From sequence record OM339718.1: a DNA stretch of 64,000 nucleotides, one strand, 5' to 3'. A program made the translations under genes and the position numbers. Shown one piece after another: positions 6,973 to 11,484 of the stretch (positions within the stretch are counted from its first letter, which is position 1; the number at the start of each line of letters is the position of its first letter). Under the pieces are notes generated by a model that did no database searches, had not been told where the DNA came from, and saw only the letters and a list, made by a program, of their open reading frames with translations.

Positions 6973-9207
6973 ATGAAAATTGTTACAAATAAACAACCTG
7001 TATTTGGGACTGTTATGGAAGAGTCCCGCGATTTTGGTATGAAGTTTGATGAAAAAGCTTATACCATTCTTAGTTCTGGGCTTTATAAATTCAAGATCCG
7101 AGCTTTCATTCGTGAATTGAGCTGTAACGCAATCGATGGTCACATTGCATTGGAAAAGATTGGTGGAACCCCACCGAAATATTTTGATGTAGAGCTTCCG
7201 TCTGATATTAATTTGCAATGGAGACTCCGCGATTATGGTATTGGTATGGACAAGGATGGTATTTTCAACTTGTTCACCACATATTTTGCATCAACCAAGG
7301 AAGATTCTGACGATTTTATCGGTGCATTTGGTCTTGGTTCTAAAAGTCCGTTCTGCTACACAACAACATTCACTGTAACATCGTGGTGTAAGGGTCTCAA
7401 AACCGTCTATAGCATCTTCATGAACAACGGTATACCAAAGTGTGTCCCCATCTTCGAAGAACCGTCAGACGAGCCCACAGGTATCGAAATCGTAATCCCT
7501 ATCGATCAAGATGATATTACCGAAGTTCGGAATGAAGCTCGGGTGGTGTACCACACATTTGATAAAGATGGATTTTATCCAAACATCATCAATCAGAATT
7601 TCGAGTTGACTAACTACAAGTCATCTGGTTACTATGGTTCCATCATGGATAATGGCGTATATGCTGTTATGGGTGGTGTTTCTTACAAGATCCCAGCAAA
7701 GCTTTACGAAAATGAGGTTTGTTCGGTATTCTTTAATAATTCATATAACTTTATCGATTTTCCTGTTGGGTCTCTCAATCCTCTCCCGAACCGGGAAGAA
7801 TTGAGTCTTGATAAACACACACTGAATACACTGAATTCTTATTTTAAATCCCAATCGGACCAAGTTATTGATGAAGTCAATAAAAAGGTTTCTGAACATG
7901 GAAAGGATGCTCGAAGTAAAATTCATGCTATTTTGTCTATGGATTTTGGTGAGCATATCTTTAACAAAGTATCAAAGATTATTGACCATAACGGCAAGTC
8001 TCTTCAAGATTGGCGCTTCTTCTACGAAAGTATTACATCTTCGAAAGAATGGTCTTTGTTTAAAGATTTCTGTGTGGATTACAGTTATAAAAACAAAAAT
8101 TTCGTTTATATCGATACATTTAGTAATGCGGTGCGAAATGTTTGGAATCTTGAACGTGCAAGATATTACGGGTCGTCTCGTAAAATCGAGTTTAATGACT
8201 ATTTCATGCCGTCAGTAAAGAATAAGCGATATCCATTCCCAATCCTTCTGTCTAATATGGATGGTAAGTGGAAGGTAAGGATCAAGCTTCTTATGAAGTA
8301 TGGTATCATTCCTAATGAACGGGTTGTTGTTATGAGCGATTACCCTTATTCTCGCAAACCTTTCAAGAATGTAACTCGAAATCTCTTTATCCAGATTGCA
8401 AAGCGTTACCACAAAGACGATATCGATGTTTTTCATGTAGAGAAGTTGTATGATAAGCACGTTCAAGAAATTGAAGAGAAAGAAGCAGAAGAGAAGCGCC
8501 AACGTCGTTTAGAAGCACAGCGGAATAGGGCTAAAACTCCACGTTACAAACCAGACAACTCGCATTATTATAATAAAGGGTATCGCAGTACTGGCAATTT
8601 CCTTGCCAAGGATGTACACGAGCTTAGTGGGCTGTATGGTCTTCGTTCTGGCGAATATATTGTTGTTGATGGTCATGAAGTTACAGATGGACTTCAAAGT
8701 TGGTTATCTGAGATGTTTGATACAACGTTGTATGCATTTCCGAAAACCCTTGAACGACGGGCTAACATGAATGAGAATTTGACTCTCATTACAAAGGAAA
8801 TGATCAAAGGTAAACTTGTTGAATATCTCAATAACAATTTAAAGGGTAATAAAATTGGTTGGAATATCAATAGGTCTGATAAGCCAAGGGTCGATATGGA
8901 AATTACTCGGGAAATGAAGGACTATTTTGGTATCTCGGAATCCGGTGATTGGGATCATGATCTTGGTAATATTTATGTTCATGCTCAAGAATATTTGACT
9001 GAACATGAATATCAAGTTTATACCGATGTTGTTGAAAACCATCGTCAGAGTATGTATGATGTATATCATAATTTTTATGACGAAATGAAAAAGCAATTCC
9101 CCATGGAATGTGCGATTCTTAGGTTGAAGAAAAATTATAGTTGTGTAAAAAACGAAGAGTTCGAACTTGCAACTAAACTTATTATGGAAAACTACAAAGG
9201 GGTGTAA
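6973..9207 (+). CDS. rIIA: rIIA protein
   Basis: N-terminal HSP90-like ATPase IRELSCNAID, RDYGIGM, STKEDSDDFIGAFGLGSKSPF; 744 aa; precedes rIIB. Confidence 0.93.
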   Translation: MKIVTNKQPVFGTVMEESRDFGMKFDEKAYTILSSGLYKFKIRAFIRELSCNAIDGHIALEKIGGTPPKYFDVELPSDINLQWRLRDYGIGMDKDGIFNLFTTYFASTKEDSDDFIGAFGLGSKSPFCYTTTFTVTSWCKGLKTVYSIFMNNGIPKCVPIFEEPSDEPTGIEIVIPIDQDDITEVRNEARVVYHTFDKDGFYPNIINQNFELTNYKSSGYYGSIMDNGVYAVMGGVSYKIPAKLYENEVCSVFFNNSYNFIDFPVGSLNPLPNREELSLDKHTLNTLNSYFKSQSDQVIDEVNKKVSEHGKDARSKIHAILSMDFGEHIFNKVSKIIDHNGKSLQDWRFFYESITSSKEWSLFKDFCVDYSYKNKNFVYIDTFSNAVRNVWNLERARYYGSSRKIEFNDYFMPSVKNKRYPFPILLSNMDGKWKVRIKLLMKYGIIPNERVVVMSDYPYSRKPFKNVTRNLFIQIAKRYHKDDIDVFHVEKLYDKHVQEIEEKEAEEKRQRRLEAQRNRAKTPRYKPDNSHYYNKGYRSTGNFLAKDVHELSGLYGLRSGEYIVVDGHEVTDGLQSWLSEMFDTTLYAFPKTLERRANMNENLTLITKEMIKGKLVEYLNNNLKGNKIGWNINRSDKPRVDMEITREMKDYFGISESGDWDHDLGNIYVHAQEYLTEHEYQVYTDVVENHRQSMYDVYHNFYDEMKKQFPMECAILRLKKNYSCVKNEEFELATKLIMENYKGV

Positions 9208-9217
9208 GCCCCTTTTT
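9196..9217 (+). terminator. Possible terminator hairpin at rIIA end
   Basis: AAAGGGG-tgtaag-CCCCTTTTT. Confidence 0.55.
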
Positions 9218-9231
9218 AATGAGGAAATAAA

Positions 9232-10425
9232 ATGGAAACTATCCATATTGAAAAACTTGAAGCATTGATTCGTAGCGGTATTTACGATGTAACCGGTTAT
9301 AAAGTAAAAGAACTTGACAACAACAGAACTTTTGCATATTACAACCTAGACGATCTCGATGTTGTAGAACTTGTTATGTATATCGAGGAAGAACTTGATA
9401 TAGATCTTGGCGATCTCGATGTACTTGAAGGATGGGAAGCCCTTACAATTAAAGAATTGATTAAATTGATGGTTGGGACTAATAAAATCGATTTGCAATT
9501 TGATGTACATGATTATTCTGAAAATAAAGTCGAAGAAAGTCATGATGATAAAATTATCCGACTTCATAATCTCGGAATCAGCCAAAACGAAATTTCCCGT
9601 CAAACTGGTATCCCTCGTTCAACAGTAGGTGATGTAGTTCGTCGCTATAAGGGAATTCAGAAGAAGTCGGATAAAACAATCCATTTGAAGGAAATAATCG
9701 AACCGGTTCATACCCCCGTGGTATCTTGGAATGCAAGTTATGACTTTATTAACTGCTTCATTGATGGAACCCCATACGTTGCAGACCGAGCCCACCCACG
9801 GTTTGAAGATGCGTTTCAACTCCTGATCCGCGACAATGATGTGGTCGGTGCGGTAAACCTGATTTCTATCAAAGAAGCAATCAAAACCTATTCTTCTGGT
9901 GATATTCGGATTGAAGGCGACACACTCTACTATCGTGATATTGTTCTTGATACATCGATGACCCGAAGAATCATTGATATGTGGGCGTCCGGGGAAGAGT
10001 TTGAGTATATGGTTACCTTCCTGAAAAACCTGTTACAGAATCCGCGCCGTGCGGCTGTATACGAGCTTTTTGACTTCCTGACTCATAGTGACATCAAAAT
10101 CACCAACGATGGTCATTTCCTAGCGTACAAGCGCGTTACCGAGGATTATAAGGATATCCGCACCCACACGTTTGATAATAGTATTGGTTCTAAGCCACGA
10201 GTCGAGCCATTTGAGGTAGATGACGACCGAAACAATACTTGTGCTGCGGGTCTTCATGCTGCTGCTCGTCACTACATCCCATACTATTCATCTTGTGAGA
10301 ATGACCGGGTTGTGATGGTTAAGATCAACCCAGCCCACGTCGTTGCTATCCCAACTGATTACGACAATGCGAAACTTCGTACTTGGACTTATGAAGTAAT
10401 CTCAGACGTAACTCACGAGTTCTAA
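9232..10425 (+). CDS. rIIB: rIIB protein with N-terminal ACP-like domain and HTH
   Basis: C-terminal rIIB core (FLKNLLQNP, DGHFLAYKRV, CAAGLH, VKINPAHVVAIPTDYDNAKLR); HTH GISQNEISRQTGIPRSTV; N-terminal LDDLDVVELVMYIEEELDI. Confidence 0.9.
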   Translation: METIHIEKLEALIRSGIYDVTGYKVKELDNNRTFAYYNLDDLDVVELVMYIEEELDIDLGDLDVLEGWEALTIKELIKLMVGTNKIDLQFDVHDYSENKVEESHDDKIIRLHNLGISQNEISRQTGIPRSTVGDVVRRYKGIQKKSDKTIHLKEIIEPVHTPVVSWNASYDFINCFIDGTPYVADRAHPRFEDAFQLLIRDNDVVGAVNLISIKEAIKTYSSGDIRIEGDTLYYRDIVLDTSMTRRIIDMWASGEEFEYMVTFLKNLLQNPRRAAVYELFDFLTHSDIKITNDGHFLAYKRVTEDYKDIRTHTFDNSIGSKPRVEPFEVDDDRNNTCAAGLHAAARHYIPYYSSCENDRVVMVKINPAHVVAIPTDYDNAKLRTWTYEVISDVTHEF

Positions 10426-10530: not shown

Positions 10531-11484
10531 ATGGCTATCAGTAATTACGAAACTGTCATCTCACAGATTGTCGAGATGAAAGAGAACAAGGGTATGGGTT
10601 CGCGAGCAATTGCGAAAGAACTTGGTATTTCTAAATCTTCCGTAAACTATTATTACGAGCGTTTCATGGAAGAGAACAATATTGTGGACGATATCAAAAC
10701 CGGTCCCCGTGTTCTAGTTCTGGATATTGAAACCGCTCCGATTATGGCTCATGTATGGCGCTTGTTTAAGACCAACGTTGGTCTGAATATGATCGAGTCC
10801 GATTGGTATATGCTTAGTTTTGCTGCTAAATGGTTTGACAGTGATGAAATCATTTATATGGACCAGCGAAATGCACCAAATATCGAAGATGATTCAGAAA
10901 TGCTGAAAGTTCTATGGGAGCTTCTTGACGAAGCTGATATCGTTCTTCATCAGAATGGTCGTCGGTTTGATATTCCAAAAATTCGCAGTCGTATGATCGT
11001 TCATGGTATGAAACCGTTCTCTACCGTGAAGCATATTGATACTCTTGAGATCGCAAAACGCACGTTTGGTTTTACTTCCAACAAGCTGGAATATATGACC
11101 GATAAGCTATGCACAGAAACCAAGAAATCTAAACATACTCAATTCCCCGGTTTTGAATTGTGGAAAGAATGCTTGGCTGGTAATATCGAAGCTTGGAAAG
11201 AGATGGAAGAATATAATATTGATGATATCGTATCTCTCCAAGAACTATATGTTAAATTGGCTCCATGGTCGGATCGTCTTCCGAACTTCTCTCTTTATAC
11301 AGATTCAGACAAATTCACTTGCGTATGTGGAAATCATGAGTTTGAAGATGCCGGGTTCGCGTATACCGAAGTTAGTAAGTTCAAACAATATAAATGCACC
11401 CACTGTGGTAAACACTGGCGTGGTCGCAAGAACCAAATCACTAAGATTAAGTCAAAACTTCTGTTGACTAATGCTCGTGAATAA
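10531..11484 (+). CDS. HTH + DnaQ/RNase H-like exonuclease + Zn ribbon
   Basis: GSRAIAKELGISKSSV HTH; VLDIETAP, QNGRRFDIP, YNIDDI; C-terminal CVCG...CTHC. Confidence 0.8.
   Translation: MAISNYETVISQIVEMKENKGMGSRAIAKELGISKSSVNYYYERFMEENNIVDDIKTGPRVLVLDIETAPIMAHVWRLFKTNVGLNMIESDWYMLSFAAKWFDSDEIIYMDQRNAPNIEDDSEMLKVLWELLDEADIVLHQNGRRFDIPKIRSRMIVHGMKPFSTVKHIDTLEIAKRTFGFTSNKLEYMTDKLCTETKKSKHTQFPGFELWKECLAGNIEAWKEMEEYNIDDIVSLQELYVKLAPWSDRLPNFSLYTDSDKFTCVCGNHEFEDAGFAYTEVSKFKQYKCTHCGKHWRGRKNQITKIKSKLLLTNARE

Follow-up and report, generated by a model that had tools for sequence, protein, structure and literature searches.

A diverged acyl carrier protein-like domain predicted at the amino terminus of rIIB in T4-like Aeromonas phages

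The rIIA and rIIB genes are among the oldest in molecular genetics. The biochemical mode of action of their products is still described as unclear; rIIB of phages T4 and T6 is needed for growth on RexAB-carrying cells and is a trigger of bacterial gasdermin systems (PMC10312443). The DNA analysed here (the window, a whole stretch of 64,000 nucleotides from record OM339718.1, to which all positions refer unless a contig is named) belongs to a T4-like Aeromonas phage of the CC2/P19 type (CC2/AS-zj group; Straboviridae, Emmerichvirinae, Ceceduovirus). Its rIIB raises a simple question. T4 rIIB starts at a helix-turn-helix (HTH) domain, whereas the window protein carries about 95 extra amino-terminal residues that comprise a domain resembling acyl carrier proteins (ACPs) and a linker. 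What is this segment, does it truly belong to rIIB, and what might it do there without the serine to which carrier proteins owe their prosthetic group? The organization of the locus is as follows, all features being on the plus strand.

6973..9207 (+): rIIA gene, 744 aa; an ORF directly upstream of rIIB, annotated rIIA in CC2 and AS-szw
9221..9225 (+): Shine-Dalgarno sequence GAGGA, 6 nt ahead of the start codon (ATG, 9232); read from the sequence
9232..10425 (+): complete rIIB ORF, 397 aa plus stop, in the order ACP-like domain, linker, HTH, linker, rIIB core
9232..9501 (+): ACP-like domain, residues 1–90 (PF00550, AF2, Foldseek, dN/dS); residues 1–82 are encoded by 9232–9477
9349..9399 (+): recognition-helix region, residues 40–56, with 12 of 17 positions identical to E. 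coli AcpP 35–51
9352..9354 (+): Asp41 codon GAT, by alignment the counterpart of AcpP Ser36, which accepts phosphopantetheine
9505..9531 (+): flexible linker 1, residues 92–100; pLDDT below 50, length different among lineages, dN/dS 0.4–1.4
9541..9648 (+): helix-turn-helix domain, residues 104–139; HTH Pfam matches at 106–142, AF2 helices; common to T4 rIIB
9670..9699 (+): flexible linker 2, residues 147–156; pLDDT below 50
9721..10422 (+): rIIB core, residues 164–397, PF26926 Phage_T4_rIIB; phrog_609, confident AF2

The ORF is identified as rIIB by its match to phrog_609 (E 6e-106, PHROGs) and by PF26926, which is precomputed on all of its homologues. Its DNA is 100% identical to that of Aeromonas phage P19 and 95.6–99.8% identical to that of 14 other records. 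The order rIIA, rIIB is shared with T4 and is also found in CC2, AS-szw, ZPAH1, L006 and L007; a longer arrangement (topoisomerase, small genes, rIIA, rIIB, RNase-H-like exonuclease) is common to the window and two metagenomic contigs. The gene found 3' of rIIB (10531–11484, plus strand) codes for an amino-terminal HTH and a 3'-5' exonuclease domain of the RNase_H_2 type (PF13482, 5.7e-15). The annotation in phages 65 and CC2 reads "DNA polymerase exonuclease subunit", and the gene is syntenic in all relatives inspected.

T4 rIIB (312 aa) has an HTH and a core homologous to those of the window protein, with 39% identity, and can be aligned only from residue ~100 onwards. Relative to the canonical plan of HTH plus core, the first ~95 residues are therefore extra, as an earlier note made from the DNA letters alone had proposed; T4 rIIB has no ACP-like domain. 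The same note placed the added domain in frame with the HTH and the rIIB core, and a single ORF does encode all three. The AlphaFold2 (AF2) model of the full-length protein (pLDDT 88, pTM 0.56) features three well-folded modules, with disordered linkers between them (92–100 and 147–156). The core is modelled confidently, with pLDDT mostly above 85, and found no fold match in the PDB by Foldseek; the matches of the full-length model are all to the ACP-like domain. The fused architecture is kept in phage 65, avDM6, ZPAH1, Aswh_1 and the metagenomic proteins P0002, P0005 and P0008, and the linker differs among them by indels of whole codons.

That the domain is an artefact, be it a fortuitous motif, an ORF joined in error or an upstream gene of its own followed by an internal rIIB start, is barely credible. 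The one feature that speaks for it is an ATG close to the end of the domain in the window phage (Met80). This codon is not preceded by a Shine-Dalgarno sequence and is replaced by Ile in CC2 and AS-szw, while in phage 65 and ZPAH1 the stretch from residue 56 to residue 115 is free of ATG, GTG and TTG, so that HTH and core could not be made separately there; a translation start at Met80 was ruled out on these grounds. Against an artefact stand also the strong GAGGA ahead of the ATG at 9232, the presence of the same ORF with the fused domain in fifteen independent phage records, and the agreement of the profile, pairwise and fold evidence set out below.

PF00550 (PP-binding) matches residues 14–78 with 28.0 bits (E 2.7e-6) when the domain is searched alone and with 24.6 bits in the whole protein, the curated gathering cut-off being 20.8 bits. 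The cut-off is passed independently by P0002 and P0006, relatives from two other lineages; P0003, P0010 and P0008 either score below it or are not matched by Pfam at all. In a BLASTP comparison the domain and E. coli AcpP are 39% identical along 54 aa (E 2e-9 for the pair), and phmmer against the PDB sequences retrieves E. coli AcpP chains at ~1e-5. Ubiquitin rows that topped the latter search were discarded as chance, for they are sums of many sub-threshold repeats of ~2 bits each. The ACP signature that the earlier note had quoted is found at residues 38–61 and 72–77. The nearest NCBIfam models are those of fatty-acid-synthesis ACPs, and the equivalog cut-offs of AcpP itself are not reached (26.6 versus 70.45 bits for TIGR00517 and 26.5 versus 106 for NF002149). 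Judged by these profiles, the amino-terminal domain of rIIB is a diverged member of the ACP superfamily and not an AcpP.

The structure prediction carries the same message. AF2 folds residues 1–98 into a confident ACP-type helical bundle (pLDDT 86, alignment of 23 rows), the fold that had been proposed from the motif, with helix I at 6–21, helix II at 41–55, a short turn at 68–70 and helix IV at 73–82; a small strand pair (2–5 with 86–89) closes the domain. ACPs or carrier domains make up nearly the whole of the 50 best Foldseek matches in the PDB, at a probability of ~1.0. The TM-score by target is 0.65–0.77 for the ACPs within the best ten and 0.65–0.68 for E. coli AcpP chains, and the E-values are merely 0.01–0.15 because the domain is small (~80 residues). 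Among the matches are ACPs that are structural subunits of large membrane complexes (MmpL5-AcpM and EmbC-AcpM). The domain also has the very low pI of AcpP (4.1 versus 4.05). On profile and model evidence, residues 1–90 of rIIB thus form a genuine ACP-fold domain that is homologous to the ACPs of type-II fatty acid synthesis. The likeness to E. coli AcpP extends to the fold, a nearly identical acidic recognition helix II and the pI. The rIIB domain differs by Asp in place of Ser, by its fusion to a phage protein, by the extra closing strand pair, by the absence of associated synthase or transferase genes and by a score far below the AcpP equivalog cut-off.

The difference at the serine bears directly on chemistry. 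As is known from phosphopantetheinyl transferase biochemistry, a carboxylate cannot accept a phosphodiester. In the alignment Asp41 (GAT, 9352–9354) lies opposite AcpP Ser36 and the acceptor Ser of the D-S-L motif is missing, so that in the window phage the domain, by this alignment, could not carry phosphopantetheine; the earlier note had said as much of both the substitution and the loss of loading. The substitution stands for the window phage but does not hold as a conserved feature, because sister lineages have Gly, Glu or Ser. At this codon P0002 has AGT (Ser), phage 65 and avDM6 have GGA (Gly), the CC2 group has GAT (Asp), and ZPAH1 and P0010 have GAA (Glu); Glu is also found in P0008 and P0011. 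An acidic residue, Asp or Glu, occupies the site in four of six fused lineages. Because of the Gly and Ser in sister lineages, we rejected the idea that Asp41 represents a generally conserved phospho-mimic. The Ser-bearing P0002 domain might be modified by a host enzyme. Searches of the near-identical genome G001 for a phosphopantetheinyl transferase, an AMP-binding enzyme or a ketosynthase (PF01648, PF00501, PF00109) returned none, with positive controls, and no second PF00550 match was found in that genome.

If the serine is dispensable, what is retained? Six residues of helix II (L42, D43, E46, L47, E52 and D56) are the same in every fused lineage, and the conserved trait of the domain, as read from the alignment, is this acidic helix and not the Asp at the Ser site. 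The same residues are the core structural motif of the family too, and their conservation could stem from folding rather than from a binding face. Identity of the domain goes down to 17–40% across lineages, with ~50–60% for the core, and its dN is 3–4 times that of the core. The dN/dS of the domain in close pairs is 0.12–0.23, compared with 0.07–0.10 for the core; it reaches 0.67 for phage 65 versus avDM6, and the constraint is therefore moderate. The reading frame is intact across lineages with saturated dS.

These values bear on the possibility that the domain once was a working carrier and is now in decay, still loadable in the relative with Ser and functionless in the window phage. We consider it very improbable. 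Replacement of the acceptor Ser by different residues in different lineages would fit decay, as would the fast dN and the several lineages that Pfam scores under its cut-off or does not match (P0003, P0010 and P0008). Against decay stand the dN/dS of 0.12–0.23, the open frame and confident AF2 fold that persist across lineages with saturated synonymous divergence, and the retention of the domain in every lineage of the clade that has a complete gene. Nor does the phage encode carrier-pathway enzymes that could account for a carrier role in the past. The variable Ser site, the invariant helix II, the dN/dS and the missing carrier enzymes taken together therefore point to a fold that is selectively kept for a cofactor-free job.

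The distribution of the fusion is narrow. The ACP-like domain is present in nine of 64 rIIB cluster representatives (218–695 aa), all nine being the closest relatives of the window rIIB, and in about 21 Aeromonas phage records, which form a small syntenic clade. A scan of IMG/VR with the amino-terminal alignment returned only the isolate genomes AS-zj, CC2 and 65, the other matches being to the HTH only. The domain would have joined rIIB in an ancestor of Emmerichvirinae-type Aeromonas phages. Its position within the protein is not fixed: P0010 and P0011 (L007:6001-7146) have the swapped order HTH-ACP-core, and the module is therefore positionally free. A tblastn search of phage records with the HTH-ACP amino terminus of P0010 found nothing. 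In P0009 (551 aa) an unrelated extension of ~240 aa, without a Pfam match, precedes the HTH. Judged by the sequences of P0009, P0010 and P0011, the amino-terminal architecture of rIIB in the clade is plastic.

Outside rIIB, the ESM Atlas clusters closest to the domain are ACP-like families of viruses, 87–95 aa long. The representative search likewise returned small ACP-like proteins, four of which are serine-less: P0067 (Glu), P0071 and P0076 (both Ala) and P0075 (Asp). P0067 and P0071, the two serine-less stand-alone proteins with enough flanking DNA, are encoded in phage-like contigs (L008:5001-5267 and L009:5001-5285); the contig of P0071 is 175 kb long and has TerD, vWA and NAPRTase genes. 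Protein gp353 of Pseudomonas phage Lu11 (L023:1240-1662) has a carboxyl-terminal ACP-like domain with Asp at the Ser site. These small phage proteins are the nearest relatives of the rIIB domain and several are likewise serine-less; they differ in being stand-alone or fused to other domains, and they are not beside rII genes in the contigs inspected. In a maximum-likelihood tree that combines the fused with the stand-alone ACP-like domains, most of the branching lacks resolution, and the tree is compatible with one or several acquisitions. Its sole supported grouping joins P0002 (Ser) with the Gly-bearing phage-65 group (97/95).

The structural observation is solid, and from it we infer a function for the domain. 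Helix II is the universal recognition helix of ACPs. The serine-less fold probably serves as a protein-docking module. It would act without cofactor, flexibly tethered in front of HTH and core, with the acidic helix-II face (D43, E46, E52 and D56) sitting on the basic ACP-docking surface of a partner; this contact would recruit rIIB to the partner or else obstruct the latter. Two candidate settings for such a module have to be weighed, one in the host and one within the rII system.

The reading that we favour, and hold tentatively, is mimicry of the host ACP towards a client that tolerates apo-ACP, the domain being a cofactor-independent docking module. It is favoured because an interface internal to the phage has no evident need for a helix II so similar to that of AcpP. 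The preferred partner would be sought among host ACP clients that tolerate the apo form, PlsB (a membrane acyltransferase) and MukB being examples. Apo- and holo-AcpP stimulate MukB to the same degree (PMC8602292), and apo-ACP strongly inhibits PlsB, the glycerol-3-phosphate acyltransferase (PMC3896788); both are possible targets. SpoT is reported not to bind apo-ACP (review PMC3896788). This speaks against the connection to SpoT and stringent signalling that the earlier note had drawn: SpoT needs holo-ACP (PMC3896788), the analysis gave no support for the link, and SpoT is an unlikely target.

As the main alternative, the domain may be an internal adaptor or regulator of rII with no host clients, which binds rIIA or the rIIB core or folds onto the basic HTH. 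We regard this as possible and doubtful. In one variant the domain would present an acidic, DNA-like surface that gates the adjacent basic HTH, and indeed the acidic domain (pI 4.1) always adjoins the HTH (pI 10.5 for residues 104–145), in either order. The Foldseek matches to ACPs that serve as structural subunits (MmpL5-AcpM and EmbC-AcpM) are in line with an internal role. A further point in its favour comes from rIIA. Alignment coverage of rIIA is 86–100% only in P0083-P0088, which belong to the clade with ACP-bearing rIIB, and 36–57% in hundreds of others, this amino-terminal 36–57% being the GHKL-type ATPase region (PF13589 in some). The carboxyl-terminal half of rIIA, to which other rIIA proteins do not align, is therefore specific to the clade and co-occurs with the ACP-like domain. 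Complex prediction for the ACP-like domain with rIIA (alignments A4 and A8) scored 0.00, a value that counts neither for nor against. The full-length AF2 model weighs against an internal contact, since it has disordered linkers and no confident packing between domains (pTM 0.56), and an adaptor of this type has no obvious need for a helix II that remains so close to the host AcpP.

An ACP function free of the cofactor has precedents, among them the effects of the apo form on MukB and PlsB mentioned above. The mitochondrial ACP of Plasmodium falciparum has likewise lost the prosthetic group and is retained for protein binding, its partner being Isd11-Nfs1, to which it binds although it has no Ppant group; it differs from the phage domain in being eukaryotic and stand-alone, and the two have sequence kinship only at the superfamily level (PMC8547962). 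A bolder extension would make apo-ACP mimicry the host-targeting arm of rIIB, directed at PlsB or MukB, and the fused and stand-alone domains members of a wider class of phage ACP mimics. We judge this extension unlikely. If true, it would give a lead to the contact that the rII system makes in the cell, which has long been sought, and the phage ACP-mimic class would serve host takeover or counter-defence.

In the full-text literature searched, no description of an ACP or phosphopantetheine domain in rIIB was found, nor anything relevant on phage ACPs with anti-defence activity; PF00550 is already flagged on the ZPAH1 protein by automatic Pfam annotation. A natural rIIB variant equipped with an ACP recognition helix, whose way of interacting is well understood, offers a concrete bait for the cellular contacts of rIIB. 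The variant further extends to viruses the short list of ACPs known to be kept after loss of the prosthetic group, and it points towards a larger, uncharacterised group of phage ACP-like proteins that have no serine at the site. Should the domain be a mere clade-specific structural add-on, the interest would be local, for the annotation of Aeromonas phages.

A last observation concerns the closely related phage AS-szw (L003). Its mismatches to the window are concentrated in the ACP-linker-HTH segment (35 in the 500 nt at 9201–9700, domain dS 0.26), while the remaining rIIB and the next gene are almost identical (core dS 0.018). This pattern suggests local recombination or allele exchange at the ACP-linker-HTH module.
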